Of a DNA stretch of 64,000 nucleotides, positions 6,358-60,500 are shown in pieces. The position numbers and the translations under genes were made by a program. Position 1 is the stretch's first letter, and the number at the start of each line of letters is the position of its first letter. Below the pieces are notes generated by a model, which had not been told where the DNA came from, did not search any database, and worked only from the letters and a program-made list of their open reading frames with translations. Source of the DNA: Eutreptiella sp. 'Long Island Sound 2002' (taxonomy: Eukaryota > Protista > Euglenida); contig OZ038379.1 of NCBI GenBank assembly GCA_964036045.1, forward strand, positions 12,772,001 to 12,836,000. Reading direction: 5' to 3'.

Positions 6358-7610
6358 CCTACGTGTGTGCGGCGTCCTTGGCCTCCCGGCTCCTGTTCAC
6401 CGGTGTGCCTGCTCGGTGTGTTGTGTTGCGTGTGCGGCGTCCTGGGCCTCCCGGCTCCTGTTCACCGGTGTGCCCGCTCGGTGTGGTGTGTTGCGTGTGC
6501 GGCGTCCTGGGCCTCCCGGCTCCTGTTCACCGGTGCGCCCGCTCGGTGTGTTGTGTTGCGTGTGCGGCGTCCTGGGCCTCCCGGCTCCTGTTCACCGGTA
6601 CGCCCGCTCGGTGTGTTGTGTGGCGTGTGCGGCGTCCTGGGCCTCCCGGCTCCTGTTCACCGTTGTGCCCGCTCGGTGTGTTGTGTTGCGTGTGCGGCGT
6701 CCTGGGCCTCCCGGCTCCTGTTCACCGGTGCGCCCGCTCGGTGTGTTGTGTTGCGTGTGCGGCGTCCTGGGCCTCCCGGCTCCTGTTCACCGGTGTGCCC
6801 GCTCGGTGTGTTGTGTTGCGTGTGCGGCGTCCTGGGCCTCCCGGCTCCTGTTCACCGGTGCGCCCGCTCGGTGTGTTGTGTTGCGTGTGCGGTGTCCTGG
6901 GCCTCCCGGCTCCTGTTCACCGGTGTGCCCGCTCGGTGTGTTGTGTTGCGTGTGCGGCGTCCTGGGCCTCCCGGCTCCTGTTCACCGCTGTGCCCGCTCG
7001 GTGTGTTGTGCTGCGTGTGCGGCGTCCTGGGCCTCCCGGCTCCTGTCCACCGGTGTGCCCGCTCGCCGTGTTGTGTTGCGTGTGCGGCGTCCTGGGCCTC
7101 CCGGCTCCTGTTCACCGGTGTGCGCGCTCGGTGTGTTGTGTTGCGTGTGCGGCGTCCTGGGCCTCCCGGCTCCTGTTCACCGGTGTGCCTGCTCGGTGTG
7201 TTGTGTTGCGTGTGCGGCGTCCTGGGCCTCCCGGCTCCTGTTCACCGGTGCGCCCGCTCGGTGTGGTGTGTTGTGTTGCGTGTGCGGCGTCCTGGGCCTC
7301 CCGGCTCCTGTTCACCGGTGTGCCCGCTCGGTGTGTTGTGTTGCGTGTGCGGCGTCCTGGGCCTCCCGGCTCCTGTTCACCGGTGTGCCCGCTCGGTGTG
7401 TTGTGTTGCGTGTGCGGCGTCCTGGGCCTCCCGGCTCCTGTTCACCGGTGCGCCCGCTCGGTGTGTTTTGTTGCGTGTGCGGCGTCCTGGGCCTCCCGGC
7501 TCCTGTTCACCGGTGCGCCCGCTCGGTGTGGTGTGTTGTGTTGCGTGTGCGGCGTCCTGGGCCTCCCGGCTCCTGTTCACCGGTGTGCCCGCTCGGTGTG
7601 TTGTGTTGCT
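6358..7610. repeat. 65 bp minisatellite, ~19 copies, inside the insertion
   Basis: CGGCGTCCTGGGCCTCCCGGCTCCTGTTCACCGG at 6435, 6500, 6565 and onward. Confidence 0.95.
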
Positions 7611-7629
7611 GTGTGGGGTGCCGCTGCGG

Positions 7630-7845
7630 GGCGCTCACTCGTCCATCCGGACGGCGGCTATCGTAGCCGGCAAGGGCTGGGTACCCTCCGGGCGCACACA
7701 CGTCCATCCGGACGGCGGCTGTTCGTAGCCGGCAGGGGCTGGGTACCCTCCGGGCGCGCACTCGTCCATCCGGACGGCGGCTGTTCGTTGCCGGCAGGGG
7801 TTGGGTACCCTCCGGGCGCGCACTCGTCCATCGGGACGGCGGCTG
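7630..7845. repeat. 61-62 bp tandem repeat, ~3.5 copies, hairpin-rich
   Basis: GTCCATC at 7641, 7702, 7764 and 7826; internal inverted repeats GTCC/GGAC and CGGCTA/TAGCCG. Confidence 0.85.
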
Positions 7846-8070
7846 GCGTGCGTGTGCTTGCTCTTTGTGGCCGGGTCGGGCGGGCCGGCCTCCCGGGCGC
7901 GCTGTGGTGCGCCTCACCTTTTCCTTTGGCCGCTTTGTCTTTCTGCTTTGCTTGGCCCCCTCCGGGCTGGGGTTGCCCCCCGCTCTCTTGCTGCCCTTGC
8001 CGTTCCTCGTTGCCTGGGCGCCGTGCTTTGGTTGTTTTTCTCGGCCTCCCGCTGCCTGGCCCGTGTGGCC

Positions 8071-9285
8071 CGTGTGGCCAAGGATCTTTCAAGGATCTTT
8101 GGGGTGTGGCAAGGGATCTTCGCCACTTTTGTAGTGGTCTCACGTCAGGGGTCCCTCACAGAGGGAAAAAGTGGTAAAGATCCCGAGCCAGTCCCCAAAG
8201 ATCATTGAAAGATCCTTGGCCACACCTCAAATATTCCGGTCGCTTGGCTTCTTTGAGGGATCTTTGACGTGTGGCCAAGGATCTTTCAAGGATCTCTGGG
8301 GTGTGGCAAGGGATCTTTGCCACTTTTGTAGTGGTCTCACGTCAAGGGTCCCTCACAGAGGGCAAAAGTGGTAAAGATCCCGAGCCAGTTGCCAAAGATC
8401 CTTGAAAGATCCTTCGCCACACCTCAAATATTCCGGTCGTGGCTTCTTTGAGGGTTTTTTGACGTGTGGCCAAGGATCTTTCAAGGATCTTTGGGGTGTG
8501 GCAAGGGATCTTTGCCACTTTTGTGTTGGGGACACGTCAAGGGTCCCTCCCGGAACACAAAAGTGGTAAAGATCCCTAGCCACACCCCAAAGATCCTTGA
8601 AAGATCCTTGGCCACCGTCAAATATTTCGGTCACTTGGCTTCTTGGAGGGTTTTTTGACGTGTGGCAAAGGATCTTTCAAGGATCTTTGGGGTGTGGCGA
8701 GGGATCTTTGCCACTTTTGTGTTGGTCTCACGTAAAGGGTCCCTCACGGCGCGCAAAAGTGGCGAAGATCCCAAGCCAGACCCCAAAGATCCTTGAAAGA
8801 TCCTTGACCACACGTCAAATATTCCGGTCGCTTGGCTTCTTTGAGGGATCTTTGACGTGTGGCCAAGGATCTTTCAAGGATCTTTGGGGTGTGGCGAGGG
8901 ATCTTTTCCACTTTTGTGTGGGGCACACCTCAAGGTCCCTCATAGAATGCAAAAGTGGTAAAGATCCCTAGCCACACCCCAAAAAACCTTGAAAGATCGT
9001 TGGCCAGACCAGATGTCAAATATTCCGGGCGTTTGGCTTCTTTGTGGAATCTTTGACCTGTGGCCAAGGATCTTTCAACGATCTTTGGGGTGTGGCTAGC
9101 TAGGGATCTTTGCCACTTTTGTGTCGGGGACACGTCAAGGGTCCCTCACAGAACGCAAAAGTGGTAAAGATCCCTGGCCACACGCCAAAGATCCTTGAAA
9201 GATCCTTGGCCACACGTCAAATATTCTGGTCGCTTGGCTTCTTGGATGGATCTTTGACGTGTGGCCAAGGATCTTTCAAGGATCT
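8071..9285. repeat. 197 bp inverted-arm satellite (right block, ~6 units, more diverged distally)
   Basis: Resumes in register after the TSD; mismatches and indels increase toward 9285. Confidence 0.95.
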
Positions 9286-15789: not shown

Positions 15790-18340
15790 CTCCCCCAGCC
15801 CCTGCCCCACTCACACCTCCCTTCCCTGGCAGCGCCAGTGGGCCGTCCCACGGCTGCCCTCCTACCCTCCACCCTCCCCCAGGAGCGCCTATGGGCGATC
15901 CCACAGCTGCGCTCCACCTTCGCCCCTCTCCAGCGGCGCCTGTGGGCGATCCCACGGCTGCTCTCCCCCCCTCGCCCTCACAACCCGCCCCATTATACCG
16001 CCGGCCGAGTGGCCGAGCGGTCAACCCCATGAACTGCCGAGTGGCAGTCGTGGGTTCAATTCCCTTCCTTCCCCTTGTACCCCCAACGCACAACACAGGA
16101 AATACAATATAGGTAGCTGTACTACACGTAACTGTATTTTGCCTGCTAGTATTACCTACCTACCTACCAGTGCAATAGGGTATATTGTGTTATTACCAGT
16201 ACTGTATCTCCGTGACCCCTCCCCTACCGCCCCCCACAGCACATCTGCAGGTGCTTCCACTCACAGAACCTAAGGAGCGGGAGCCTCAACGGTGCCCCAC
16301 ACAGGTAGACCTCCCTCCCCCCTGCCCCGGCCCCTGCCCCTCTCGCCCCTCCCTGCCTCGATTGCAGCAGTGGGCTGTCCCACGGCTGCCCACCTGCCCT
16401 CCACCCTCCCCCGGGAGCGCCTGTGGTCGATCCCACAGCTGCGCTCCACCTTCCCCCCTCTCCAGCGGCGCCTGTGGGCGATCCCACGGCTGCTCTCCCC
16501 TCCTGCCCCTCACAACCCGCCCCATCGTACCGCCGGCCGGGTGGCCGAGCGGTCAACCCCATGAACTGCTGAGTGGCAATCGTGGGTTCGAATCACTTCC
16601 TTCCCCTTGTACCCCCAACACACAACACAGGAAATACAATATAGGTAGCTGTACTACACGTAACTGTATTTTGCCTGCTAGTATTACCTACCTACCTACC
16701 AGTGCAATAGGGTATATTGTATTATTGCCAGTGCTGTATCTCCGTGACCCCTCGCCTACCGCCCCCCACAGCACATCTGCAGGTGCCTCCACTCACGGAA
16801 CCTGAGGAGCGGGAGCCTCAACGGTGCCCCACACAGGTGGACCTCCCTCCCCCCTGCCCCGGCCCCTGCCCCTCTCGCCCCTCCCTGCCTCGATTGCAGC
16901 AGTGGGCTGTCCCACGGCTGCCCACCTGCCCTCCACCCTCCCCCGGGAGCGCCTATGGGCGATCCCACAGCTGCGCTCCACCTTCCCCCCTCTCCAGCGG
17001 CGCCTGTGGGCGATCCCACGGCTGCTCTCCCCTCCTGCCCCTCACAACCCGCCCCATCGTACCGCCGGCCGGGTGGCCGAGCGGTCAACCCCATGAACTG
17101 CTGAGTGGCAGTCGTGGGTTCGAATCACTTCCTTCCCCTTGTACCCCCAACACACAACACAGGAAATACAATATAGGTAGCTGTACTGCACGTAACTGTA
17201 TTTTGCCTGCTAGTATTACCTACCTACCTACCAGTGCAATAGGGTATATTGTATTATTGCCAGTGCTGTATCTCCGTGACCCCTCGCCTACCGCCCCCCA
17301 CAGCACATCTGCAGGTGCCTGCACTCACGGAACCTGAGGAGCGGGAGCCTCAACGGTGCCCCACACAGGTAGACCTCCCTCCCCCCTGCCCCGGCCCCTG
17401 CCCCTCTCGCCCCTCCCTGCCTCGATTGCAGCAGTGGGCTGTCCCACGGCTGCCCACCTGCCCTCCACCCTCCCCCGGGAGCGCCTGTGGGCGATCCCAC
17501 AGCTGCGCTCCACCTTCCCCCCTCTCCAGCGGCGCCTGTGGGCGATCCCACGGCTGCTCTCCCCTCCTGCCCCTCACAACCCGCCCCATCGTACCGCCGG
17601 CCGGGTGGCCGAGCGGTCAACCCCGTGAACTGCTGAGTGGCAGTCGTGGGTTCGAATCACTTCCTTCCCCTTGTACCCCCAACACACAACACAGGAAATA
17701 CAATATAGGTAGCTGTACTACACGTAACTGTATTTTGCCTGCTAGTATTACCTACCTACCTACCAGTGCAATAGGGTATATTGTATTATTGCCAGTGCTG
17801 TATCTCCGTGACCCCTCGCCTACCGCCCCCCACAGCACATCTGCAGGTGCCTCCACTCACGGAACCTGAGGAGCGGGAGCCCCGCCGGTGCCCCACACAG
17901 GTGGACCTCCCTCCCCCCTGCCCCGGCCCCTGCCCCTCTCGCCCCTCCCTGCCTCGATTGCAGCAGTGGGCTGTCCCACGGCTGCCCACCTGCCCTCCAC
18001 CCTCCCCCGGGAGCACCTGTGGGCGATCCCACAGCTGCGCTCCACCTTCCCCCCCTCTCCAGCGGCGCCTGTGGGCGATCCCACGGCTGCTCTCCCCTCC
18101 TGCCCCTCACAACCCGCCCCATCATACCGCCGGCCGGGTGGCCGGGCGGTCAACCCCATGAACTGCTGAGTGGCAGTCGTGGGTTCGAATCACTTCCTTC
18201 CCCTTGTACCCCAGCACACAACACCGGAAATACAGTATAGGTAGCTGTACTACACGCAACTGTATTTTGCCTGCTAGTATTACCTACCTACCTACCAGTG
18301 CAATAGGGTATATTGTATTATTGACAGTACTCTCTGTCCG
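15790..18340 (+). repeat. 532 bp tandem array with a tRNA-like Pol III head in each unit; degenerate copy to about 18700
   Basis: A-box TGGCCGAGCGG and B-box GGTTCGAATC with heads at 16003, 16535, 17067, 17599 and 18132; each unit has three TGGG-NNNN-CCCAC hairpin subrepeats (best copy CTGTGGGCGATCCCACAG) and (TACC)4. Confidence 0.93.
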
Positions 18341-25609: not shown

Positions 25610-26130
25610 GACGGGCCATGGGGGGTGCTCCTAGTCAGGACCCCAACCCAAGGGGGGGGGGGTTTACCCCCCCCCCCTCTACAGACCCCAAAATGGTTGT
25701 ACGGAACAATGGGTTTTGTGGGCGCCGGAGAATTTGTTTAAGGCATACTGCAGGGGTAAATTTTTTTGTTTGACCCTATGTGTCTATACTCAAAATACTC
25801 AGAATTTTGTGGAGAATTCAAAAATGGATGAAAAACACAAAAAAGGATTTTGACCCCGACCCGACCTCTGGGTCGGACCTTGGCTGATGGGAGCCTGAGT
25901 TGATGGGCAAATTTTTCTTGAAAAAATTTTTTACCCCATTTGTGTATATTCAAAATGATCAGCGTGTCATAGGGATCATTTTGAGGTATGTATTTTGGGG
26001 TACCCACCGACCCCCCCCCCCCCCCGAGGAGCCCGGCGGCTGACCGCCCGACCCGCCGACCCCCAAGGTTTGGGTCAACCAGGGGGGGCGGGGGGGGCTC
26101 CCCCCCCCCCTTGGTTGACCCACTTGAACT
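25610..26130. mobile_element. AT-rich MITE-like dispersed repeat, related to about 48620-49030
   Basis: CCATTTGT(G/C)TATATTCAAAATG(A/T)TCAG is shared (about 25937 and 48883); poly-G/C ends; 10 bp inverted repeat GGGTCAACCA/TGGTTGACCC; termini not resolved. Confidence 0.5.
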
Positions 26131-31394: not shown

Positions 31395-33250
31395 AACCCT
31401 CCCCCAGACTAGTGCTCTCTTTCATGGAATAAAATGCAGTATGAGCCCCATCTTCATGCTTAGTGCACGACAGTGCTTGCAATGCGTCACCTCTCTTGGC
31501 ATGGATTCAGCTGGATTTACGCCAGACATGACATCTTGACGCTGGATTGCACCGGTTTGAGGACGGCAAACATTCACGGCGGCAGGAACATGGGCACATG
31601 TGACAAAGCATGCAAATCGCACTCAAGGAAGAGCGACGCTGACAAATAATTTGATACCGTACGGCAAAGACCTTTCCGGTCTGCTTAGGAGCTTCTTTCA
31701 GGCATGGTACACATGTCCGTTGTGATGGAGTGTTGCATGGGGGGAGGAGGGGGGGGGTACGGCAGGGGTTTCCCGGCCATTTGTCTTCTCCACTGCCTTC
31801 CCCCATGCAGCCAAAAAAAGCATGAGGACGGCAAACACAACTGCTCTTCCAGACTGTGGGTTCAGAAGTGCCATGTCATACGAAAGATACGGCACCGGCT
31901 ACTGGGTGTACACACGGCACTCCGCCTGTATGGAACCCCCTCCCCCAAGTTCCCCAATGACTGGAAGGACGACCGGGGGGTGATTGGGGTTGTGAAGCGG
32001 AGGTGGGGGCATCAAAAGGGGCCGAGGCTGTCAGGAGGAGGAGATGTTGTTGCCCAAATGTCCCATTCTTTGTCGTTTAACAGCCCATAGCCGCCTGCTT
32101 GCATGGTCTGCAACAGTGGCAGCTCAGGGGCCCCCTGCTGTCTGCGGCTCAACCCCAACTTGTGGCGGTCCTAGGGCCACGCTCTGCAGGAGTGTCTACT
32201 TGGCACGCACCGACCACGCAACTTCTGTGCAAGTGTTCTGGACAAACCGTTGCGTTGGCGCTGGCCATTTGGGGGTTTCACGATGGATATGCACTGGACA
32301 GAGATTTGCTGATGCTAGACATGCCCTGGACATGCCTTTTTGGCCCACAACCCTCCCCCAGACTAGTGCTCTCTTTCATGGAATGAAATTCAGTCTGAGC
32401 CCCATCTTCATGCTTTGGTGCATGACGGTGTGATTGCAATGCTTCACCTCTCTTGGCATGGCTTGCGCTGGATATACGCCAGACATGACATTTTGACACT
32501 GGATTGCAACGGTCTGTGCGGCGCAAACACAACTGCTCTTGTAGACTGTAGGTCCAAATGTACCATGCATGAAAGAAGGTCCCAAGCAGACCAGAAATTT
32601 TATCACCTGCTTCTTCCTCTAGTACTCAACCATCAGACCTGCCTCCAAGTGGTTTACCGTAATAGTCAGAGGCACCTTCTGCTCCGTCTGCTACTTTTTC
32701 GGATGCACCAACTAAAGGACCTCCGTCTTCCGCTCCCTTTGGAGCCCCATCAAGTGCTCCTTCATCCGCCCCTACTGACCATATAGATCTGTGTATACGG
32801 TTATATTTTGATTGTTTCAACAGATTTTCATTTCACATTGCACAATCCAAGTGTTGTGCTCTTTTTTCTCGGGGAGCATGGCCGCTTTAGCTCAGTTGGG
32901 AGCTTCAGACTAAAGATCTGAAGATCCCTGGTTCGATAACGGGAGGTGGCATCACTCAGAGTAGCTCAGTTGGTATAAGCAGACCCGAAAGGCCTTGCCG
33001 TACGGTATCAAATTATTCGACAGCGTCGCTGTTCCTTCAGTCACAATTTTTTTGGCTGCATGGGGGAAGATAGGGGAGGAAACAAATGGCCGGGAAACCC
33101 CTGCCGTACCTCCCCCTTCCCCCCCCATGCGACACTCCCTCACAACGGACCTCGACCAACATGTGTCATATGAAAGGGCACCAGCCACTGGGTGTACAAA
33201 CGGTACCCCGCTCGCCTGTATAGAACCCCCTCCCCCAAGTTCCCCAATGC
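31395..33250. repeat. Cluster of direct and inverted duplications
   Basis: Direct: 31395-31572 vs 32351-32528, and 31875-31958 vs 33163-33249. Inverted: 31632-31686 vs 32977-33030, and 31757-31819 vs 33047-33112. Confidence 0.8.
32881..32951 (+). pseudogene. tRNA-Phe pseudogene (anticodon AAA instead of GAA)
   Basis: GCCGCTT/AGGTGGC acceptor stem, TTCAGA-CTAAAGA-TCTGAA anticodon arm, GGTTCGAT; 2 nt missing from the D arm and T stem mispaired; a second A-box (TAGCTCAGTTGG) at 32962. Confidence 0.8.
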
Positions 33251-43500: not shown

Positions 43501-44984
43501 TTTTATCCGACCCACCGTGTGGACCTGAAACACCTGTGGACACAACGTTCTCAGGGGCCCACCCCTGACAAGCACACCTTGCTTTATGATAGAGTATCTT
43601 CAACCACACATCCCATTTAATGAATTAGCAGGCCCTAGAGTGCGTCCCTCGTGCTCTTCCGACAGGCTAGCGGCCCCGGTCCTCGGTATGCTGTGGGTTA
43701 TGGGACAAAGCTCGCATTCGCCGTCGCCTCCTGCACATGGTGGACAAAAAAGCATCCTCGTCGTGGCCTCTCCCGGTTCATCTGGGTTGGCCACACACCC
43801 ACGCACAGCTTCTTTTTCCCATACGCAAACAAGCTGTGATGGCATGCTTGCCGACGTTTCAAGTGCTGCCAGAGGTACGGCAGAAGGCACTCAAGCAGAA
43901 GGCGCTCTGCGTTCGTCATGGGCATGATTGACTAGACCACCATGTGTTGCGCTCCTCGGGGTGTCCACCTGGGATAGCCGCATCAAGATCCACCAGAATC
44001 GCACCGCAAACAAGTTTACAAATTCATATTAGGGGCATCTCAGTTTGCCCCGCCTCATGTCCGCCCAAGAATGAAGGAGCCTTGTAACCCATACAGCTAG
44101 CTGTGGACTATCTCGTCTCTTGATCTTAGCCGGGAGCCTCTGCGGACGCAACTTGTTGCTCGTCGGTCGCTGAAGCAGTGGTGGGGGGATGGCTTGTGTT
44201 CCATGTGGGGTGAGGCGGTGTTGGCATGTTGTGACCGCACCGATGATGGGAGTACCCGAGTTCACCCGTTGTGGTACAGAGTCATGGGCTAGTGGTGCGT
44301 CCACTACAGTGGTCGCTGACGACATGTCGTTGGCAACGCCGTGGTCCAAGTATTTTTTCACCAAGGACCCTCAAATACCGGTCGTTGGCCTCCACGGGAG
44401 CTTATGGAACATGTTTCAACTACCGGTAGAGTTCCTTCAGCTCAAGGCCTTCATTGAGTACTCCCAACTGGCCAAGGTGTATTGTGGGGTGCATGAGTGC
44501 GTCGTCGGCAGTGGCGGCCACGGTATGCTTGAGGTGGACACTGTGGACGAGGCATGTCCACAGTGTCCTGTGCTTGTCCAGCCCTATCAGCACGTCTTCA
44601 GGCGCACGACAAAGAAGCCAATTAAGGTGCAAACAACATTCTGAAGATAATGTCACGCATGCTTTCTGTGCTGCAAGGCGAGCATCCCTTGTTCATCCCC
44701 CTGGGCCTACTTCACACTACCAATCACGACATTTCATAGCCGCAGTCAGAACAAGGAATACTTTTTCTGGGTGCGACCCCGCTTGGTTGAATGAATATAT
44801 ATGATGGCACAAAGCCACACAAGCAATAATTCAAATTAGTCTGTTGGCACAAGATTCCGAGTACCAGTTGTCATCTTGCTTCTGTGCCCCGTTGCATGCC
44901 CCATGGCCCTATGAGACACTGCAATCTTTTTTGGTTGGTCAGTCACAGTCCATCACCGTCCGTCATAGTCGATTACCCACCCTC

Positions 44985-45236
44985 AATCAGTCAGTCAGTC
45001 AGTCACCCAGTCACTCAGTCAATCAATCAGGCAGTCAGTCAGTCAGGCAGGAAGGCAGGCAGGCAGGCAGGCAGGCAACAGTCAGGCTGTCAATCAGTCA
45101 ATCAGTCAATCAGTCAATCAGTTTATCAGTCAGTCAGCCAATCAATCAATCAGTCAGTTAGCCAGTCAGTCAGTCAGGTAAGCAATCAGGCAGCAGGCAG
45201 GCAGTCAGTCAGGCAGGCAGTCAGTCAGTCAATCAC
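44985..45236. repeat. Compound (CAGT)/(CAAT)/(CAGG) tetranucleotide microsatellite
   Basis: Direct. Confidence 0.95.
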
Positions 45237-45281
45237 TCAGAATGGCATGGCACTCTTTCTGGTTTTACGCATCTTGGCGTC

Positions 45282-45308
45282 ACTTTCTGAGTGTCTTATT
45301 TTTTTTCG
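45282..45308 (+). other. Genome-embedded Euglena-type spliced-leader sequence
   Basis: ACTTTCTGAGTGTCTTATTTTTTTTCG vs the E. gracilis SL as I recall it, ACTTTCTGAGTGTCTATTTTTTTTCG (one extra T); followed by AAC, not by the GT donor of an SL RNA gene. Confidence 0.88.
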
Positions 45309-45331
45309 AACAAGATGCCACAGCTGCTGCT

Positions 45332-48300
45332 ATGAATCACATCCCTGACTTCCACAAGTCTATCAAGGATGCACAGACTCAGGACCAAGCCATCTATAAC
45401 GACCTGTTGGCCATACGCCCTCCATTGTCGCGGGTCTCGGGGCTGCGCAACGTGGTCAAGTCCCTCTTAGGTGTGGCCTCCAAGGCCTCTTGGGCCTTCC
45501 CGGCTCACGTCAACGCTCTGCTCCGCGATGGCTGCGCAGCCTTTCCAGATCTGGAGGCCACCCTTGAGCGATTTGCGGCTACCTGCCTTCACAAAGTGCA
45601 AACCCTGCAGAAGACTGTTGGGCACCTCGAAAGGGAGAGCCTGCAGACGCTCAAGGAGGTTGACAGCCTGCGTGTGCAGCTGCAGCACTCCCAGACCTTG
45701 GCAGCACGGCGCCTTTTGTCTTTCTCCCTCTTCACTGCCTGTAGGCTGCTCAGAGAAGGAAAGCTGAAGCGCTCCATCATGCCTGCGGGTCGCGTGACGA
45801 TGGTTGCGACGTACGTATTTGAGATTGCGGAGATTTGGCGGAACGACGAGATCACAGGCGCTCTCGAGCTGATGGTTCAGGAGTTTGAGAAGTCGTTGGC
45901 GGAGTGCAAAGGTTTCAATGCCTGGGACGACGGCTTTGGGAACCACTTGATGGTGTTCAAGGAAGCGGCGGACGCCATTCTGTGGTGCTGCCAAGTGCAG
46001 ACAAACCTGCTCAAGATCGATTGGCCGGCCCGTTTGCTGCAGGAGAACTCGTGCAAACCCGTGTACAAAAAAAACGGGGACTTAATCCTCAACGGGTTGC
46101 GTCTGAAGATGGGGATACACACCGGCATTCCGGACACGCAGTGGAAGGGCAAAGGTGGCAGCATGTACTCCGGGCCGCGGGTGGTCGAGACGGAGTCCAT
46201 CGCGGGGATGGCCTCGATGGGGGAGATCCTAATGAGCCAGGCCACGTTCGCTGACGTCACCAAGTTCGCGTCGCCGGAAGTCACGCAGAAGCTGCACGAT
46301 GGCAACATCGCGTGGCTGCAACGGGACGGTGAGTGTATGGTGGTGGATGGCACTGCCTCGACCCTGCACATTGTGTACTCCACGGCGCTGATGCCCAGGC
46401 GGGGCTTCCTGCTGTCGCAAACCGCTGACAAACGGCTGCAGATCTACCAGGGCAAGCTCACGCTGAGCAGCCGCCTGGGGAATCTCAGCGTCCCTGAGGG
46501 CGGCGGCGTGGGCCTGTACTCGAAGCAGGGGAAGAAGGAGCCGCTGCACGTGGAGCCAATGTCCGTCCACCAGCGCACGGCCGCCATCGTGCACAGTTTG
46601 GCCTCCGCCTTCGACCTGGACACCAAAGGCCACGAGCTGGTGGACTTGCTCACGCAGGTCTTGGCGAAGGTCCAGCTTCTGAAGGCGCAGGTCGCGGCGC
46701 TGGAGGAAGGCACGTCGCGGAGGCACGGGTCCCCGGGGAGCGCTGCTGCCGCTTCGGAGCGTGGAACGGACGGACGCCCGCCGTCTTCGGACCCCGAGAC
46801 CAACGAGAAGGTGGACAAGGAGCTGATGCTGCTCTCCCTACAGCCGTTGGCGCACCTCGGCAGCTTCAGCCTCACAGCCCGCGTCCTTGCGGGCTTTGAC
46901 AAGGCGACCCGCGACCTCATGGCCCAGGGGCCGGAGCAGACCGGCTCGTCGTGCTGGTTTTGTCGCCGCCACACGGACGCTGACGTGCGTGGCGCCCCCA
47001 GCGATGAGCGCTGGCGCTTGCCCAGCCCCTCATCTCCCTCGAAGACGACCCCGCGGTCAGAGGACGGGAAGCAAGACACGCCACGCGATCTGGTGCCCCG
47101 TCCAGACGACGTTTGCGCGCGCTGTGGCAGCTCCAAGAGCCCTAGAGAACCCAAGAGCCCAGGGACCCCACCGTCGTGGGGGCTATCCAAGGGGATTCTA
47201 AGGACCGGCAAATCCAAGAAGCAAGTGCGGTTCGGACGCGAGCATCAGCTCCGGCTGCGCACTGCGGATTGTGAGACCAGCGATATCGATTGGGGGGACA
47301 GTGCCGACGCCAGTTCCGCGAGCCCCGCCAGTGGCGAAGCGTTCCCCCGCGTTACAAGTCCCACGGTCCCCCCATCCGCCGCCCCCGGTAGCCCCCCTAC
47401 CCCAACGAAGTCGGGTGATTTCGACACCGCTGTCCCAGACGATGACCTTGTCGCCCCCCAGGACCCCCCGAGCCCGCAGGCTGGCACTGGTCCTGATGCC
47501 CCGCCCGTCGCGCCTGCGGCCGACACGGGGGCCGAGATACCCCCGGAGGCAATCGTGGAGGAATGCACGGAGGGGGATACGGCCTCGAAAAGCAGTAGCT
47601 CGCCCCTGGAGCCCGTGGAGGCCGGGGCCTGGCCCCAGGAGGAGTTGAATGGCGGTGAGGTGTTGCCGTGGCAGAACTCCACCACGGTCTCCGTCTCCGC
47701 TGTCATGGCGCACCCGGTCCCCGACGGCCCCGCAGGCAAGGCCCCAGACAAGGGCAGAGAGCACTCGCCGGGGGGTACGCCCAGGTCACAGCCGCAGGGG
47801 GGTACGCCCAGGTCACAGCCGCAGGGGGGTACGCCCAGGTCACAGCCGCAGCAGGGGCCCTTCCTGCACCACCGCAACTCTGTAGGGCCTGACCCGCCGG
47901 AGCCCACCAGCGAAGAGGGTGACGGCAAGCCCCTGAGCCGTGGCGGGTCCGGCGCGCAGCTCACCAGGCGACGCCGGCCACCGAGGCGGCAAGGCAGTGG
48001 CCTCCGTCTGGCGGAGAGCTCCCTCGCCGTTGAGGAGGATGAGTTGGAGGCAGCCCCGGCTACTGAGCCCCTTTGTACAGAGGAGGACAGAGGTGCGACG
48101 CCAGTGCCGGCGTCTCCGACCGCCTCGGCGTCAGCATCTTCCATTTCCAACGCCGAGCCGGCCACTCCCCCGGCTGCCCGCAAGCTGTTGTCCCCAAAGG
48201 TCCGGAGAATCTCCAACGCCACGGACAGCTCGCGAATGACGTCATTCAAAGAGAAGATGCGGCGCATCAAGGCGGAGCAGAAGAAAAAGCAGGCGGCACT

Positions 48301-48502
48301 GGAGGAGGAGTATGCCACAATATCGCAGCTGATGCAACCCCCGGCAACGTCTGCGGACTACTCACATCTGCAGACGATGCATGGCGGTGGCGGGATCATG
48401 AAGGTGAGTGTCAAGGGGCACAACGCAATCCAGCGACAGCGGGAAGGGCGTAGCCAGCGCGTCACCTCCGTCTTGGATTCCGCTGCCGGGTTTGACTTGT
48501 GA
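45332..48502 (+). CDS. Intronless class III adenylate/guanylate cyclase-like protein, 1056 aa, probably catalytically inactive; long disordered C-terminus
   Basis: DWPARLL...GLRLKMGIHTG...YSGPRV...GEILMS is the euglenozoan-type cyclase fold; N-terminal coiled coil; first in-frame ATG 23 nt after the SL. Confidence 0.88.
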   Translation: MNHIPDFHKSIKDAQTQDQAIYNDLLAIRPPLSRVSGLRNVVKSLLGVASKASWAFPAHVNALLRDGCAAFPDLEATLERFAATCLHKVQTLQKTVGHLERESLQTLKEVDSLRVQLQHSQTLAARRLLSFSLFTACRLLREGKLKRSIMPAGRVTMVATYVFEIAEIWRNDEITGALELMVQEFEKSLAECKGFNAWDDGFGNHLMVFKEAADAILWCCQVQTNLLKIDWPARLLQENSCKPVYKKNGDLILNGLRLKMGIHTGIPDTQWKGKGGSMYSGPRVVETESIAGMASMGEILMSQATFADVTKFASPEVTQKLHDGNIAWLQRDGECMVVDGTASTLHIVYSTALMPRRGFLLSQTADKRLQIYQGKLTLSSRLGNLSVPEGGGVGLYSKQGKKEPLHVEPMSVHQRTAAIVHSLASAFDLDTKGHELVDLLTQVLAKVQLLKAQVAALEEGTSRRHGSPGSAAAASERGTDGRPPSSDPETNEKVDKELMLLSLQPLAHLGSFSLTARVLAGFDKATRDLMAQGPEQTGSSCWFCRRHTDADVRGAPSDERWRLPSPSSPSKTTPRSEDGKQDTPRDLVPRPDDVCARCGSSKSPREPKSPGTPPSWGLSKGILRTGKSKKQVRFGREHQLRLRTADCETSDIDWGDSADASSASPASGEAFPRVTSPTVPPSAAPGSPPTPTKSGDFDTAVPDDDLVAPQDPPSPQAGTGPDAPPVAPAADTGAEIPPEAIVEECTEGDTASKSSSSPLEPVEAGAWPQEELNGGEVLPWQNSTTVSVSAVMAHPVPDGPAGKAPDKGREHSPGGTPRSQPQGGTPRSQPQGGTPRSQPQQGPFLHHRNSVGPDPPEPTSEEGDGKPLSRGGSGAQLTRRRRPPRRQGSGLRLAESSLAVEEDELEAAPATEPLCTEEDRGATPVPASPTASASASSISNAEPATPPAARKLLSPKVRRISNATDSSRMTSFKEKMRRIKAEQKKKQAALEEEYATISQLMQPPATSADYSHLQTMHGGGGIMKVSVKGHNAIQRQREGRSQRVTSVLDSAAGFDL
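47771..47851 (+). repeat. 27 bp in-frame repeat x3 (GGTPRSQPQ)
   Basis: GGGGGTACGCCCAGGTCACAGCCGCAG x3. Confidence 0.95.
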
Positions 48503-51500
48503 TGCAAAGGCCCTATGATGTTGCGCTGCGATGCAGTGCGGGTGGGATTAGTACAGGGAGGTCGGACCCTCCCCCACCCCCAGCCCCCCACCGCCTCTGG
48601 ACCCCTCAACCCATACTAATGGTCATGCATGGAGAACAGGTCGTTTGGGCGCCAACGGCGCCCCGAAATTCTTTGTAGCCTCTTGGTGAATGGTGGAAGA
48701 AGATTGTACCCACCAAATTGTGTATATTCAGAATGCTCACAATGAAACGGAGAATTCAAAACTACCCCCAAAACCTGAAAAAAATATTGAATCCCCCCCT
48801 CCCTCGCCCACCCTCATATGTCTGCTGGAGTGCTCTACGGTGGTTCCGTTTTTGTGAAATGATGAAAGAAGATTGTACCCCCCATTTGTCTATATTCAAA
48901 ATGTTCAGATTGAAACGGGGATTTCAACAATAACCCCAAAATGCACCACCCCCTCCCGGACCCCCCCGCCGACGCGCCACGGGGGTCGGGGTCCGGAACT
49001 GCACTTAACCGCCCCCCCCCCCCCCCCGCCATGAGTACAGCCCTGCCCCGCCGCAAGTCCTCCTCTCTGTTCGTGTCACGTTGCCCGTGGAGAATGGGGA
49101 GCCACGCTCACCTGTTTGCATTGAGACAAGCCCTGAGCGTTGCAAGTGGAAATGCGGTGTCGTGTTTAGACATGTCGGTGCAAAGGTGATGGTGAGGATG
49201 ATGCTGACCACTTACGTCGGCGCTGCTGATTTTCCCACTTTCTCTGACCACCCACAGTAGAGTGCAGAATACGAACCACCTCGGCCAGCCGCCTGTACTT
49301 GCAGAGGGATGGAGTAGGGCCTCAGAAAACCCCCGCACTGCCCCGTAACTCTCAGCAGCATGTGACTGGGGGGAAGCAGAAAGGTTTTGCTGGCGCTGCA
49401 GCATGGGGCCTCTTGGTGCTTCTGTGTGTCCACGTCCATTTTTCAGTGCGGACAAGGGGTCAAAAAATTGTCCGCCCAACAAGCTGTTGTACCAAAAGCA
49501 TGCTGGACGGTGGCTCCAACTACCGTTATCGTACGGAGGCCTGGTCGAGCTACACAGCCGAACCTCCGCGCACGCCGCGTCAGGTGCTCCCCTTTTAGGG
49601 TAATCAACTACTATGGCCAACAGACGCCTGAAACCAAGCGATGGCAGGATGCCGTCATTAGCTCCCACAAGTACGACATCCTCATGACTTAGATTCGCAA
49701 CCTGGTCGGACCCAGTGTTCTATTGCACAGTAGCTTCAATGAGAACATGCTCACTCCAGATTAGAGTCAGGGTAGTCTCCCGCCGTATGCCCTGCCACTT
49801 TTTCTAGCGATTGGTATCAACTCTCTGAGCCTCTCGTCTCACACTTCTGCACCTAATTTGGCCATTTGACATGAGACGTCATCAGCTTTGCAGCTACCGC
49901 TCTGTGGGTCGTTGTTGTCCCTACCTCTCAGTCCCTTTCGGGCTCTTCAGGACGCGTATGAGCAGCGCCCAAATGGGCATCTGGCCACTCCTGCACCACT
50001 TCATTGTGGCTGCAAAGTCAAAACGTGCTTGTGCACCCGGGATTGGCTTTCAGGTGGTGTGGGTGCCCGTCATCCCCTTTCTCTTTACAGCCCCGGACCC
50101 TGTGACCCCCCCATCCCCCCACCCGAGGCCACTCGCCTGCACACCATTTCAGCCATCAGTTCTCTGAGTGACGTGCCTTGCGCAAACAATGTGCGAAACG
50201 ACGGACTCCGTCAGCCATGTACATTGTCTGCGAGAGGGCAACGCTCTCCCTATCCGTATGCCCGATTGGCGCTGTGTTTTGGTCTGCGAATCGTGCTGCG
50301 CCCCCCCCCCCCCCCCCCACGGGCTGCTGGCTGTTCGGCAGCGGGGCCATATACTCACTGCCTGCATACTACCCCCCGCTTGGAAAGCTCCTTCCAGTTG
50401 CACAGCCCCCAGCCCCGTCACCTGCCGCAACAGACTATGGCGCCGAAGGCACAGAAGAGGGGGGCTCTCCAAAGGTGTGGGGGGGGGGGGCTGCAAACAG
50501 CTGGCACTCCTTCCGCCATATGCCCTGGACAGACTGGTCTGCGTGGTGTCGTGACAAAGGGGCAGAGGACAGAAGTTCATCAGGATGCAAAAGAATGAAT
50601 GTGCGGGACCCGGGGTCAGAGGCACGGGATCCCCCCGGCTGAGCTAACCCAAGGACACAGCCCCCCCCCCCCCTTTCCCCCGCTCCGGGCCCTGTGGGCC
50701 CTGGATAGCGCCCAGGGCAAGGGCCCCAGTGGGGCCCACAATACGGCGGGGGTAATGGGGGTGCCATGTGCGCTCAGCGCAAATTTGGCCCCCGCGTTGA
50801 GCGTTGGGATTTTAAAACGGCTGGGGGTTATGTCACCAATTTCCATCTCTCTTTTGTGGGTAGGAGTGTTCATATGCTCAAAGACTGTCTTCAAACGGAG
50901 GGCGCATTGCATTCAGTCGTTTCCACTTCAGCTTTTGGCCCATGGCATGTGGTGGGTTTCGTGTGGCTGGTGGTTTTGGGCCTAAGTCCAGTAAAGTCGA
51001 CCAAGTCATTCGCGCGGTGCGCGTGCTCTGGGCAAACACGCCCTACGTAGCCACTGTTCACTGCCTCCGCCGCGTTGGAGGGCCGGCAGCCCCCCCCCCC
51101 CCCCCAGCCCTGAACGCCTTTCTCCCCCGCCCCTCTCCCTCTGGGCCCCCCGGGCTCTTGGATCGTGCGGACCTACTGAGCCCGGGGAGTCCCGTAGGTC
51201 AAAGGTTGAAAGCTGCTGGCGCTGCAGTGCACTCCCTGAGCGAAGGGGCGGGTGGCAGGCGCCATGCGGTCTGCCGGCGGCGGGACCACTCTGGCCCTTT
51301 CGGATCCGGGTGGTTCTGTGGCGCGGCGCCTTGTCACTGGAGCCCCGAGCTCGGGATTGGGGGGCTCTTCCTGAGCCGACGCAGGGGCTTACGTGATTCC
51401 GTTCAGTTCGTTTGCAGACAGCCCCCCATTCGTTGGGGCGTTTGACACGACTGTGTGCACTGCCATCGGGTGCCCTTCGGAATCACGGGCCTGTGCCACC

Positions 51501-54500: not shown

Positions 54501-56055
54501 GTTCTGGGGATAATAGGCCCGCATGCGCTCTGTGCGCGGAGCTATCACTATCTCTAAGTTGGGACCTCAGCTTGGGCAGAAAGTGGGCTGTCTTGGTGTT
54601 GGGTTCAGTGTGTGTCTGCGAGGAGCCATGCGTGCCGAACCGATGGACTATTGCTCCTTACAATGAACTCCTCCCTCACTGTGTGTCTGCGAGGCACAAC
54701 GGGGTGCGTTGCAATAAGCCTTGCCAACTTGAGCCCGCAGATCCGTCGGGCACTGTACCCCTGTACCCTCTTCTTGTTCTGTGGTAGAAGCTCCTTTTGC
54801 CCTGTGGTCTGCCCGCCCACAATGGATTCGGTGGTGTTAGTGTGTGATCAGTTGTGTTCCACGAGGCAGCCCAAACTGCCTAGTGGTTACCTGGCGTGGT
54901 GTGTGTGCGTGCGCGCGCGCGTGTGTAATTGGGTAGAGGCACCCAGTATCGATTGTTGTCGCATGGCGCTCCTATAGACAGCTTGTTTCGCGTCTGAGGA
55001 ACACGGACAGTGGGGGATGGGTCCTGCCAACAGTAACCAGGCCCGTATGCTCTGTAGGGCCTCGGTGGCCGGCTGTACTGCCTTCTGGCGGATATGCTTC
55101 CATGCGCCGTGCTTCACGCAGAATGAAAGACGTCTAGGGATGAGTTTCTCAGTACCCCCCCCCCCCCTTGTATAAGCTACGCCCTTGTCCAAGCTACAGT
55201 AGGCAGTGTCAGTGATCGGGCACGGGAGAGGACGCAGGAGTTTGGCAACATGGGGGTGTGGGACACAGATTACAGTACGGATGTTAGTGACAGCCGGAAG
55301 CGTAAGGGCAGGAGGGTAATCAAGACTTCCTGATACGTGGCCTAAAGGCACGTGCCTGACCATAAACTAACCGGAGGTGGCGCCAGAGGCGCCTTTCTGG
55401 ACCGATGGGACAATGTGTGGTGGCGCCTGACGGCGCCTTGCTAGACACCACGAACAATGTGTGTCGCGGCTCCGCCGCGTGATACTTGCTGATTCAGGGC
55501 ATAGGTCTGTCGGTGGGGACCTATTGCTGAACTTTCCACTGTTCTATGGCCAAGCTACAGTAGGCGCAGGGACCGCATTAATTTGGTGCCTAATTTGATT
55601 CAGTACAAATGTAGTGCGGCCACATAAGACATGGGTTTGGTGACACATTTGCCAGCTACATGGAGTCATGGACACATCTGTTGTGAGTGTTTGCCCATTT
55701 GAACCCACATAGCTCTGATTTTGGGGATATTTGTGCATTATATTCCCTTTTCTTGCACCAGCTCGCCATGCAATCTTCTCTTTTTGAACCTGTGCATCTA
55801 CGGCCTTGTCCAAGCTGCAGTAGGCGTAGGGACCGTATTAATTTGGGACTTTTGCGTAGCTTATACAGGGGGGGGAGGGTAGTATTGTTCAACCACTTTT
55901 CTTGCTTTGTTCTTGTTTGCGGATCCCATTGTGTGTGTGTGTGTGTGTGTGTGTGTGATTGTGTGTGTGTGTGTGTGTGTGTGTTCACCAACAACATTGC
56001 GGCCATCGCTTCGTTCCTGGTCTGATTGTCCTTGTACCTGCCCTGTCTCTACACT

Positions 56056-57507
56056 ATGTCAAGCTCATCCAATTCACTGCAAGTCGTCATCTGCGGGAGA
56101 TGTCACAAAAGTGGTCATCGGGTAGCACAATGTCCAGAGGCCCCCCAGGGGAATGCCGCCCAGCGGGGAGAGAGAGGCCCGCCCCCCTCGCCATGTTGGA
56201 CTTGCGATTTCATTGCTGGTGCAGATGCCAATCATTGGGGAGATGAGTGCCCTGTGGCTGCTGAACGATTAAAGAATAGACAGTGCACCCTTTGTGGTTC
56301 AACACAGCACTGGAAGAAAGGTTGCGACAAGTACCTGGCGGATAAACATACAGCGAAAAATCCCCGAACCACATACTTTCCAATACAACCGCGCCAGGCC
56401 AATATGACCTGGTGCCTGCGATATGGTGTAAAAAACGCCCATGCCACGGCGGACTGTCACAAGGACAGTCCTGCCATCATCTTTCCCACGGGAGAGGACA
56501 AAGATGCAATGGAGGGCATCTGTACGTGGTGCGCCATCCGTGGACACAATTTTGCTTCTTGTATGCGGAGAGCGCCGCAACAGGCTGATGCCAACAAAGT
56601 CGCCATCGACAAGCTGTCATTGCGAGTAGATGCCCTGTCCAAATCGGTAGACCAGGTGGGAGTTCTCGATGCCCAAGTGCAGGCGCTGCGATCGGATGTC
56701 CAAGGCCTCGTTAAATGGCAGGACAAGCACATCACTGCCCACGATGCCTTGCAGCACCGTGTCCAGGATGTTGAGAATTGGAAACGCGAAACTGTATCCC
56801 AACTCCCCCAGTTCGTCACACACACGAAATTCGATGCTTTCGTCGCCTCACGGTACGCGGATACCGAGCGTGCAGCGCACTCCGCAGTCAGCCAATCCAA
56901 ATTCGACAAGTGGGTGCGTACCAAGTACGACGACACGGAAAAGAAGGCGCGTCAGGCAGTGCCACAATCGGCGTTTGATGAGTACGTATCCAGGATGGAG
57001 GGAACATGCCGCAACACCGATCCCGACACGATGATGGCCCCAGCGCGTGCTACAGGATCTTCACGCACAGCATCAGAACGAGACTCCGATGATGGGGGAG
57101 TGGCAGCAAGTGCCAAACGCAACGTAGCACGCCGCTCTGCCACGCCTAGCCGGTCACCTCCTCCCAGCGACACGGCGGGGGCCTCCTCCTCGTCGTCAGC
57201 GACGCCAGGGGCAACAGCATTTGCCTCCATGCCACCTCCTGCCTCTGACACCCCCTGGCTCCGTCTGGCTCTTGAGAACGCCGACCCGTGGGGAGATGAA
57301 GCACTGGAAGTTCTGCTTGACGTGTGGACGAGCCACATGGACTCACGGCTTCAGCAGTGGGCAGGCAAACATGCCACACAAGAGTTGGCCGCTACAGCAG
57401 GGGAACTGGCCAGAGCTGTGATGTCACCCACCAAGAGAAGTGGCATCTGCGCGATTCTCAGAGCGGCCCGTACACCCGTACGAGTGTTCACGAATTTAAA
57501 CCAATAA
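56056..57507 (+). CDS. ORF1, Gag-like nucleic-acid-binding protein (483 aa)
   Basis: CX2CX4HX4C knuckles at 56092, 56284 and 56521, plus two variant knuckles; coiled coil; TAA stop. Confidence 0.85.
   Translation: MSSSSNSLQVVICGRCHKSGHRVAQCPEAPQGNAAQRGERGPPPSPCWTCDFIAGADANHWGDECPVAAERLKNRQCTLCGSTQHWKKGCDKYLADKHTAKNPRTTYFPIQPRQANMTWCLRYGVKNAHATADCHKDSPAIIFPTGEDKDAMEGICTWCAIRGHNFASCMRRAPQQADANKVAIDKLSLRVDALSKSVDQVGVLDAQVQALRSDVQGLVKWQDKHITAHDALQHRVQDVENWKRETVSQLPQFVTHTKFDAFVASRYADTERAAHSAVSQSKFDKWVRTKYDDTEKKARQAVPQSAFDEYVSRMEGTCRNTDPDTMMAPARATGSSRTASERDSDDGGVAASAKRNVARRSATPSRSPPPSDTAGASSSSSATPGATAFASMPPPASDTPWLRLALENADPWGDEALEVLLDVWTSHMDSRLQQWAGKHATQELAATAGELARAVMSPTKRSGICAILRAARTPVRVFTNLNQ
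57495..57501 (+). other. -1 ribosomal frameshift slippery heptamer T TTA AAC
   Basis: In ORF1 phase (AAT TTA AAC CAA TAA), two codons before the stop; a -1 shift enters the open ORF2 frame (FKPITHEG...). Confidence 0.75.
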
Positions 57508-60500
57508 CACATGAGGGTGCCGAGTCCGAACCTGTACTACTGCGCTGCACCGCCGATACAGATGACGCCGACACACCTCCAGCTTACCACGATGCGGCAA
57601 TATCCCACATGCTGTCGGTGCAGTATATTTCACAAAAATTGGGTCTCGCCAAACACATACTCGCCGTCACGTCGGAGTTCGTGGACGACATATACGACTT
57701 GAACTACTTTGATCTCGACATCACACACACCAGCGACACTGCTACGAATACCATACACAGAACCAATGCCATCAGCCATTGCACCTCCGAGGAGGAAGAG
57801 CGTCATCTCACAGACCGCCGATTAACAAACAACATGTCACGAACCCCAAAGTGTGCAGGGATACCGCCACCCGTGACCACCACAGTCTTAGAGCAACAGT
57901 ACATCCCATCGTGGTTGCACAGGCGTATTGCACACACCCTGGGGGCGGTGACAGTCTGGCACCGTCCGCACATGTGGTTAACAGGTCAACACCATTGTCT
58001 CATTCGGCCAGAGCTGTCCTGTCCAGGGGCAGCAGCCCACGGCATAGGTAATTGGATGGACATACAACCTGCCTTCCCCTTCTCCCTCCCCTCCTGTGTG
58101 AAACACTTGTGGCTGTGGGCCCCAGCATATGAGGTCCCTGTTGTACAGTCCATCTTCCCCTCCCTCTCCTCCGTTGGATGGTCCAAAGGTTCCATGGTCT
58201 GGCACTTGCTTGGAAGTCAAGAGGCACAGAGATCAGTTGATGAAACACAGATCCTTAGGATTCACTTGATTCTCCAAGAGGCGGGGCACAGTTCTCTGTC
58301 CATACCACGTATACCCGAAGCCCCCCTCGTTTTGCGGGCACTCACTATCCAGATGCAAACAGCACTTGACAACAAAAATCTGGGGCGGTGGGCAGAACTG
58401 ATGCAGGCCAGGTACCGGTATCTTCCCTTCCTGTCCCACCCCGCACTGGCAATGGCCAGGAGATTGAGTCATGTCCACCGCTGGTTTATATCCCTGACGC
58501 CCCCCCGCAATGTCGTCTACCTGGTTTACAATATATGGCTCCAGGTGGTGTACATCGGCCTCACCACAGGGGCCCTGATTAGCCGGTTAAGGAAACACCT
58601 GACAGACAGCTTGGCTGATGTGGACTGTGCCACACTACACAAGCACATGGCAAAAACAGACCTCTCAGGTTGGGGAATTCTTCCACTACAATGGGTCGAA
58701 GACGACTGGCACGCGAGTGTGCGTGAACGACACTAGTGGTGGATTTTCAGGCGCTGGGCTTGCAACGACGTCCCGCCCGGAATTAGTACCTAGGGTGAGG
58801 GATCCAAATCTCGAGGTTGGTTTAATCAAAGAGTGCTGGCGGCTGTGCAGGGTATCCGCGATGCCCGACGCATCAGCGACTGGCCGCGAGTGAAGTTTCT
58901 ACAGTCAGAACTGCAGGACCTGGCTAACCGTCTCTCTATCCCGCTGTATGTCCTTGGTCACGTGACCGTACCCAACCTAACCCCGATTCAAAATTCAGCA
59001 ATTCACAGGGTGATACGCGCAATGGTGAAGTCATGCAACATTGCAGCGTGGGAGAAGCAAGTGCTACACAAGGCCGTGCGAGTGGTACGCTCCTACCCAG
59101 TCAGAGTGCGAAGTCTTTTTGAAAAACAGAGTAGGAAAGGAGACCGAGAGGCCCAAAAACCGCAATGCACATGCGCCAGCATCACATCCGACCACGGCCA
59201 CGTCATTGAGATTGAAGGCCACAAAGCGTTGATCCCAGTGCATGTTCAGAGCCTCGATGCAACTACCCTCCGCCCCAATGACTCCCTACCACTAAAGGGC
59301 ACTAAAGTGAGAGCGCGCCTTTTCAAGGACATTACTAAAATAGCAGGACAGATAGGAGCAGAAGTGCCTAACCTCCAGCACATGCTACCCTCAACCCTGT
59401 GGTGTGAGTCAGGGTCCACAGTGCGCCACGTGGAGCAGCAAGCGACAGCCATCTGTGCCTCCCACTACGTACGAATCGTGGACAAGGGGGTGGGGGTCAT
59501 GTGGGGATTTTGCCGTCAGTGGATGTGGGATATACTCGAGGAATTCTTGATCCAGGAAGGATATACCAGATGCAACCAGTCCCAACAAGACATCACAGCA
59601 CAGATACGAAAGATCATAGAGTCCAATGGCTGGGACAACGACCAAGCTGGGCGCATCGCCTCCCTGTACCTCATCGGCAAGGCAAAAAGCCCGGTTAAAC
59701 AGAAATGGCTCTGGCGACCCATCGCCGCACTCCCGAAACCCCTCTTACCAAAAAAAGACCTCACCATCGCAGCCAGAGCCATGACCACATTTTTGAAACT
59801 GGTGGCGGAAGAGACCCCTGGAAACTTCATGGTCCACTCAGTTAATCGCGTGGCAGACTGGTTTCATTGGTTGCCATCCGTTGGTTGCTCGTATATTGTA
59901 GAACTGGACTGCAAAGACCAGTTCAACCACGTACCCCCCAGTTGTGTGGAGTCACACATGACGGAGTCCAGCAAGTGGCTCGCCAAGCGGCGTCGCTGGC
60001 GCATGAAAGACATCTGCTGGAGTGTCCACAGAGACAGTAAAAAGTTGGACAGGGCAGGCCAGGGAGCCTCAAGAAAATTCTGGTACATCACGCACGGGGA
60101 CCTCAGCGACAAGATAAATTTCGAGCTGCAAAACAACAACTACGTGACAGCGGCAGGGTCCCTGTGGCAAAGGACGGGGTGTATTCCCAATGCGGGGGTC
60201 ATTCTCCGCGCAGGCAGCAGATCTGCACTGCCAGTGGGGGGTGTATATGAACAGAGCGCGCTTCAGAGACCTTGGGGAACTCCGCATCACAGAAACAGGC
60301 TTCATATACTGGGATACCCCCTGGGGAGCACTCACACTGTGCCAATTCCGAGACAACATTCTTATGGCCACAGCCTTTGCCGACACCCCAGCCATCAAAA
60401 TAGTTAAACGTGTATGCCACCTCCTACAGCGATGCTGGAACCTGAGGGTACTGTGTCCATGTGATGAACCGTGTACCCAATCCTGTCTCCAATCCTCCAC

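Follow-up and report, generated by a model that had tools for sequence, protein, structure and literature searches.

A genome-encoded spliced leader in front of an intact intronless gene of Eutreptiella: a probable retrogene of a trans-spliced mRNA

How does a spliced leader (SL), a sequence that euglenids add to their mRNAs by trans-splicing, come to stand in chromosomal DNA directly in front of an intact gene without introns? The question is raised by a locus in a 64,000-nucleotide (64-kb) stretch of the genome of the euglenid Eutreptiella sp. 'Long Island Sound 2002' (GenBank assembly GCA_964036045.1, contig OZ038379.1, positions 12,772,001 to 12,836,000 of the forward strand). We refer to this whole stretch as the window, and all coordinates are window positions. 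We directly observe the SL in the DNA, its position relative to the gene, an intact single-copy open reading frame (ORF), and a double SL in a single contig that most likely derives from RNA. The locus is probably a processed retrocopy (a retrogene) of a trans-spliced euglenid mRNA, which would now be an orphan, would still be transcribed, and would be trans-spliced again at the relic of its former leader. From the observations we infer that an mRNA was reverse-transcribed and integrated, that its parent gene was lost, and that the relic acts as a splice acceptor.

The leader in DNA and in RNA

The 5' part of the locus comprises the following features, including the coding sequence (CDS) and the 5' untranslated region (UTR).

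45282-45308, + strand: genome-encoded SL relic, full length from A1 to G26 plus one inserted T (direct reading and comparison with the published SL)
45309-45331, + strand: 5' UTR of 23 nt, apparently carried over from the mRNA and holding a mini-ORF (direct reading)
45332-48502, + strand: intronless CDS of 1056 codons plus stop (translation without internal stop; colinear euglenid homologues; single-copy depth in sequencing runs X1 and X2)
45241-45281, + strand: unique, non-SL genomic flank of 41 nt, adjoining the relic upstream (DNA contig of run X1)
44983-45240, no strand: (TCAG)n-type microsatellite of ~65 units, 41 nt upstream of the relic (Tandem Repeats Finder; the same in assembly version L001)

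The 27-mer at 45282-45308 on the + strand reads ACTTTCTGAGTGTCTTATTTTTTTTCG. The published SL of Euglena gracilis, used for E. longa too, is ACTTTCTGAGTGTCTATTTTTTTTCG (PMC6242988; the identical string is given in PMC5654406). The relic agrees with this leader at all 26 of 26 positions and carries, in addition, a single T insertion (TCTTATT versus TCTATT). With up to three mismatches permitted, the 27-mer occurs once in the 64-kb window, and it occurs in none of 100 dinucleotide shuffles; no other SL half was found elsewhere in the window. A CTTTCTG match to the SL at 45255 was considered as an older, stacked relic and rejected as being at chance level (p ~0.05). The fresh SL of the organism, as seen in the loose ends of contigs from runs X9 and X4 (see below), has the canonical TCTATTT form.

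The relic is not an SL-RNA gene, since it occurs only once in the window and its G26 is followed directly by AACAAG, with no GT of an SL-RNA intron. Rfam returned no RNA-family match at the relic, although it possibly holds no euglenid SL model, and the absent GT is the actual argument against an SL-RNA gene. Euglenid SL-RNA genes, which are tandemly repeated, share the same 26-nt leader; there, however, the GT of the SL intron comes next, whereas here a leader with an extra T continues into a 5' UTR and a CDS.

The relic lies 23 nt upstream of the main ATG (45332), a geometry as in a mature mRNA. Reading and translation bore out the arrangement that had first drawn attention to the locus, namely a 27-nt SL-like sequence, 23 nt, and an uninterrupted ORF of 1056 codons. 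An out-of-frame upstream ATG at 45315, also noticed then, is present and opens a mini-ORF of six codons (45315-45335, MPQLLL-stop). The TGA of this mini-ORF (45333-45335) overlaps the main ATG in an ATGA overlap, possibly a termination-reinitiation arrangement.

We find that the junction between SL and ORF is real genomic DNA, and not a cDNA or assembly artefact. A second assembly version (ENA ERZ25074135, ctg8265_21x_l, 148 kb) bears an exact 1086-aa gene call over the ORF and is 99.97% identical to the window across 23 kb. The differences are five homopolymer-length indels far from the SL; from the microsatellite through the flank and the SL to the ORF, the two versions agree exactly. In run X1, a contig of 2601 nt spans 45245-47799 with no differences, and in it 37 nt of non-SL flank, the SL, and 2.5 kb of the ORF are contiguous. 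DNA depth stays flat through the ORF and the flanks on both its sides, at 5-9 in X1 (11 in one bin) and at ~15-35 in X2. Depth increases in these two runs are confined to the SL itself and to a dispersed repeat at 48.7-49.1 kb; X1 and X2 therefore behave as DNA runs. The low-coverage run X4, which carries a different organism label, has exact matches to pieces of the flank and the ORF. The microsatellite (44983-45240) forms the upstream limit of unique sequence, and short-read contigs break at both its sides. The chimeric junction that the preliminary description had allowed for is therefore largely dismissed by two agreeing assembly versions, a contig across the junction, and flat depth.

Evidence from RNA comes from run X9, which is dated 2013, comprises ~11,000 contigs under the same organism label, and was guessed to be RNA. 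A random DNA sample of 3.7 Mb from a genome of ~2 Gb would be unlikely to assemble this 5' end, so X9 is most likely cDNA. One X9 contig (389 nt, depth 2.7) matches 45289-45656 exactly, the relic's extra T included. The match is preceded on its 5' side by 21 loose letters, TCTGAGTGTCTATTTCTTTTC. Together with the G at 45289, TCTGAGTGTCTATTTCTTTTC equals SL positions 5-26, with one T-to-C difference, fused to relic position 9. The contig, a single one of depth 2.7, would represent a double-leader mRNA whose second SL joins inside the relic at 45289-45292; the junction can be placed only within this interval because two donor ends are possible. New trans-splice acceptors had been proposed at 45314 or 45323, downstream of the relic, and neither is used in this sole RNA-derived contig. 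Mispriming by an SL primer during amplification is unlikely to have produced the double SL, as the relic itself is a far better priming site and its use would have erased the extra T.

Pattern scans of metagenomes for the junction between relic and 5' UTR and for the CDS start gave 0 matches each. Four estuary metatranscriptome runs contain 8-17% of the gene's sampled words.

A stacked arrangement was seen at another locus. An X4 contig from that locus, with its loose end at window position 45305, reads ...TTTTTTTT and runs on into CGTGTCTATTTTTTTTCGATTT. There, CGTGTCTATTTTTTTTCGATTT consists of a full SL end followed by a second SL copy that is truncated exactly after the internal AG. This is the pattern of stacked relics as found in dinoflagellates, and run X4 resembles DNA of the same species at low coverage.

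The gene and its product

Two further features lie within the CDS.

45767-46267, + strand: class III nucleotidyl-cyclase-homology domain, residues ~146-312 (phmmer, ESM Atlas)
47766-47851, + strand: tandem repeat in frame, with a 27-nt unit (GGTPRSQPQ) in 3.2 copies (Tandem Repeats Finder, translation)

The CDS runs from the ATG at 45332 to a TGA at 48500-48502. Its 3.17 kb form a single exon, compared with a mean of 8 exons per gene and a mean CDS of 1149 bp in the published genome annotation (PMC11252322). The ORF is single copy at ≥90% likeness in DNA runs X1 and X2.

Two homologues, both from heterotrophic euglenids, are colinear with the translation from the N-terminus: P0046 of Neometanema parovale (query residues 36-371 against its residues 12-355) and P0037 of Rhabdomonas costata. 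These colinear N-termini establish 45332 as the true start. Thus, the SL sits exactly where a mature mRNA would have it. Judged from such homologues, the gene is old among euglenids.

The predicted protein consists of an N-terminal coiled region, a cyclase-homology domain, and a C-terminal tail of ~600 residues, which is of low complexity, rich in P, S, A, and G, and contains the 27-nt repeat. A phmmer search with the N-terminal 460 residues returned 1380 matching proteins, with E values down to 1e-62 against carriers of PF00211. The top non-self matches, with 28-31% identity over residues ~146-312, bear PF00211 and come from diplonemid transcriptomes. BLASTP against the PF00211 domain of the library protein P0002 gave an E value of 3e-25, and 81 of 100 ESM Atlas matches contain Guanylate_cyc. 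A Pfam search of the protein gave no match, with Pfam's own PF00211 model not reaching E 0.1, and a PDB sequence search also gave none.

In class III cyclases, two Asp residues serve as metal ligands in the catalytic core. Both are missing here: Tyr and Asn are aligned to the two Asp of the P0002 PF00211 domain. The domain is therefore probably non-catalytic, and the product is probably a divergent cyclase-homology protein with a non-catalytic module. The Neometanema homologue apparently also lacks the two Asp (the alignment was judged by eye). The missing pair in both proteins suggests a pseudo-cyclase subfamily.

An exact look-up of the 1056-aa product found no record. Homologue searches with the full protein, its N-terminal 300 aa, and its N-terminal 108 aa gave the genomic self-match only.

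A further gene with cyclase domains was noted in a different assembly that shares the naming scheme, on ENA ERZ25333188, ctg469_11x_l (L002), where a 2086-aa gene with multiple cyclase domains stands in a compact one-strand array. Its neighbours there are EF-hand, poly(A)-polymerase-like, and leishmanolysin (Peptidase_M8) genes, a kinetoplastid- or diplonemid-style cluster.

Origin of the locus

The best explanation for the locus is a retroposed trans-spliced mRNA: the SL passes directly into a short 5' UTR ahead of an entire CDS, an SL-RNA intron is lacking behind it, and the junction is real. The source would have been a mature mRNA with the 26-nt SL at its head, then the 23-nt 5' UTR and the whole CDS, and with some or all of the 3' UTR. 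This mRNA would have been reverse-transcribed and integrated beside the (TCAG)n microsatellite, which would have fossilised the SL in DNA; the SL would later have acquired one T. With the parent lost, the retrocopy would be the only detectable copy of an old cyclase-homology gene. The copy would still be transcribed, and its transcripts would receive a fresh SL at the relic, the old leader providing the new acceptor region. A relic that acts as an acceptor may allow a promoterless copy to stay expressed where mRNAs are capped by trans-splicing.

Several results weigh against such a history. No A-run of at least 8 nt occurs before an A12 at 51734, 3.2 kb past the stop codon, and no flanking direct repeat of at least 9 nt was found that could be a target-site duplication (TSD); the TSD scan gave three 8-nt matches between the 60 nt upstream and the 3.5 kb downstream, approximately the number expected by chance. 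The preliminary description had likewise found neither poly(A) nor TSD. A parent gene was sought in the window by tblastn with the protein and 38 homologues, which found nothing outside the ORF. DNA runs X1 and X2 show no added depth and no divergent contigs at ≥90% likeness. Among 1.8 billion representatives or 5.8 billion clusters of proteins there is no close paralogue and nothing above ~30% identity. The collections searched also hold no transcript-derived protein of the gene. With a canonical donor SL end (...TTCG), the junction in the X9 contig does not follow an AG; a donor that extended two bases further (...CGAG) would make the relic's AG at 45290-45291 the acceptor. The same contig has its weak points in the T-to-C difference within the fresh SL, the depth of 2.7, and the guessed RNA nature of the run.

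Retroposition of a trans-spliced mRNA, as the preliminary description had proposed, thus agrees with the geometry of SL, 5' UTR, and CDS and with the real junction, whereas the poly(A), the TSD, and the parent were not found. The intron-bearing parent that it had envisaged is absent from the window, from the two DNA runs (at ≥90% identity), and from the protein libraries. Three library proteins were considered as the parent and set aside. The closest, P0002 and P0003, are diplonemid transcripts without a contig on record, and P0005 is uninformative, since its contig, which has a compact array of genes on one strand, belongs to a different organism.

The relic carries an age signal of one change in 26 positions, which, if neutral, suggests a modest age. 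The lack of a parent at ≥90% identity, together with an intact 3.2-kb ORF, favours an orphan retrogene under selection over a recent duplicate. Of the two states suggested earlier, "young or under selection", the young duplicate is not borne out, as there is no second copy at ≥90% identity, and an orphan under selection fits better.

Two features lie at the 3' end.

48503-48688, + strand: unique sequence after the stop, 186 nt, a possible 3' UTR remnant without terminal poly(A) (depth single-copy-like to ~48527, higher beyond)
48689-49030, no strand: dispersed high-copy repeat of two tandem ~170-nt units with a C16 run at its end (depth, internal duplication)

Summed DNA depth in the two bins that cover 48725-49118 is 157-360 in X1 and 305-1097 in X2, compared with 7 and 31 over the ORF. 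The internal duplication of the repeat shows 82% identity, and the window has a partial copy at 25919-25962. The repeat adjoins the putative 3' UTR, and the original 3' end of the retrocopy may have been hidden or replaced by it. In other X1 and X2 contigs, an SL starts 7-13 nt after a poly-C run. This hints that the dispersed repeat, or poly-C, is recurrently associated with SL-headed sequences.

The alternative that survives best is replacement in situ, in which the parental locus recombined with, or was repaired from, a cDNA of its own trans-spliced mRNA and so lost its introns and gained the SL, without a dispersed duplicate being made. This would suit a gene that is single copy, is ancient in euglenids, and lacks a parent both at ≥90% identity and in the protein libraries; the absence of TSD and poly(A) is, moreover, expected if integration did not proceed by target-primed reverse transcription. 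It is nevertheless unlikely. A non-homologous SL end is normally trimmed in homologous recombination, no synteny information marks the locus as ancestral, and the high-copy repeat on the 3' side and the microsatellite upstream resemble ordinary intergenic DNA or DNA rich in transposable elements.

We regard as slightly less probable again that a natively intronless gene, never retroposed in its entirety, later gained an SL-like segment, perhaps through a templated insertion at a 5' break with SL-RNA or SL-cDNA as the source. The SL is indeed the only retrocopy hallmark found, and the homologues come from transcriptomes only, which are uninformative on introns. Such an insert would, however, have to equal the exact SL exon from A1 to G26 without the SL-RNA intron, and to enter 23 nt upstream of the true start, that is, in the geometry of a mature mRNA, while a free SL exon occurs solely as a splicing intermediate.

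That the ORF is element-borne, its SL being part of an SL-gene-targeting retrotransposon like SLACS/CZAR, of a trans-spliced long interspersed nuclear element (LINE), or of an SL-RNA gene fragment, is highly improbable: reverse transcriptase (RT)-like ORFs do lie 7.5 kb downstream, but this ORF is single copy, has no similarity to RT, endonuclease, or integrase, has host-type cyclase-domain homologues in other Euglenozoa, and, unlike insertions into SL-RNA genes, is accompanied by no second SL fragment in the window. The chance is just as slim that cDNA or transcript reads were merged into the assembly as a chimeric SL-ORF junction: cDNA contamination would show as SL-bearing sequence and the same long reads may underlie both assembly versions, but two DNA-like runs show even depth from the upstream flank through the ORF to the downstream flank, 37 nt of non-transcript flank precede the SL and 2.5 kb of ORF in one X1 contig free of differences, and the relic's extra T, absent from fresh SL, is present alike in DNA and in X9.

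Comparable systems and other features of the window

Retrogenes marked by an SL relic are a kind known from dinoflagellates and, as candidates, from Paulinella. We found no report of one from a euglenid in the searchable full-text literature, in which the present instance is therefore unreported. For dinoflagellates, passages in three papers describe retrogenes recognised by DNA-encoded DinoSL relics (PMC6050394, PMC5585692, PMC12014239), and a passage in PMC9311404 cites Slamovits & Keeling 2008 for mRNA recycling in the group. The Eutreptiella locus and these genes have in common that the organism's own SL is encoded 5' of an intron-poor gene. In dinoflagellates, transcripts can carry a fresh SL in addition to the relic, as the single X9 contig suggests for Eutreptiella. 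They differ in phylum and in leader, which has 26 nt here and 22 nt in DinoSL. Furthermore, the relic here is full length from its first base, whereas theirs are truncated at an internal AG, and the Eutreptiella gene has a single relic, does not stand in a tandem array, and has no detectable parent.

In Paulinella micropora KR01, six candidate recycled genes, some of them single-exon, were left after manual checks (PMC9311404). They were defined by a genomic SL match <100 bp upstream of the gene start (PMC9311404). At the Eutreptiella locus the distance is 23 nt, with full coverage of the SL, although the lineage and the SL differ.

Processed retrogenes made by LINEs in animals are likewise intronless, integrated copies of spliced mRNAs that still code for protein. 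The 3' poly(A) and TSDs that characterise them were sought here and not found; conversely, the 5' end is complete and marked by the SL here, whereas animal retrocopies are mostly without such an end. The SLACS, CZAR, and CRE retrotransposons of trypanosomatids insert site-specifically into SL-RNA genes, and they too present an SL sequence that adjoins a long ORF in genomic DNA. Their ORFs, however, encode RT and endonuclease and are flanked by SL fragments on both sides, in contrast to the host cyclase-homology gene found here, which has no second fragment.

An SL relic is an unambiguous tag of RNA origin, and in dinoflagellates such relics are used to date and count retroposition events. If the same is true of euglenids, they would provide an independent test of whether SL trans-splicing keeps retrocopies viable by giving cap and leader in trans. 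They would also serve as a marker by which intronless genes of the 2 Gb Euglena genome could be annotated, and would tie retroelement load to gene turnover. The locus is a clean example, with a full-length relic, an intact 3.2-kb CDS, a single copy, and old euglenid homologues. The missing parent raises the question of orphan retrogenes that supplant their sources. Beyond a retrocopy at this one locus, we tentatively propose, as a possibility with rather less than even prospects, that euglenids extensively recycle trans-spliced mRNAs into their genomes, convergently with dinoflagellates. The retrocopy would here have replaced its intron-bearing ancestor, and the fossil SL would have been kept almost unchanged as a landing site for the next SL. 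Such a system would be self-perpetuating, and any retroposed SL-bearing mRNA could be expressed without a promoter of its own.

Among the other features of the window is a Penelope-like element (PLE) at 56026-60407, which comprises three successive long ORFs on the + strand and lies ~7.5 kb downstream of the gene. Its last ORF has ESM Atlas matches to clusters that are typical of PLE-like proteins (RT, HTH_animal, DUF8422), and its middle ORF has a weak match to GIY-YIG (E 0.046); the Pfam RVT_1 model gave no match in the PLE-like ORFs. Nothing connects the PLE-like element with the insertion of the SL-bearing gene. The sole Rfam match in the window at gathering level is a tRNA gene at 32881-32951 (+ strand, 44 bits). 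Two very GC-rich stretches (70-76% GC), with long ORFs in several frames, were noted in the regions 1-2400, 6000-8200, and 16185-17869. A series of 206-aa ORFs at 532-nt spacing in these regions suggests a tandem repeat.

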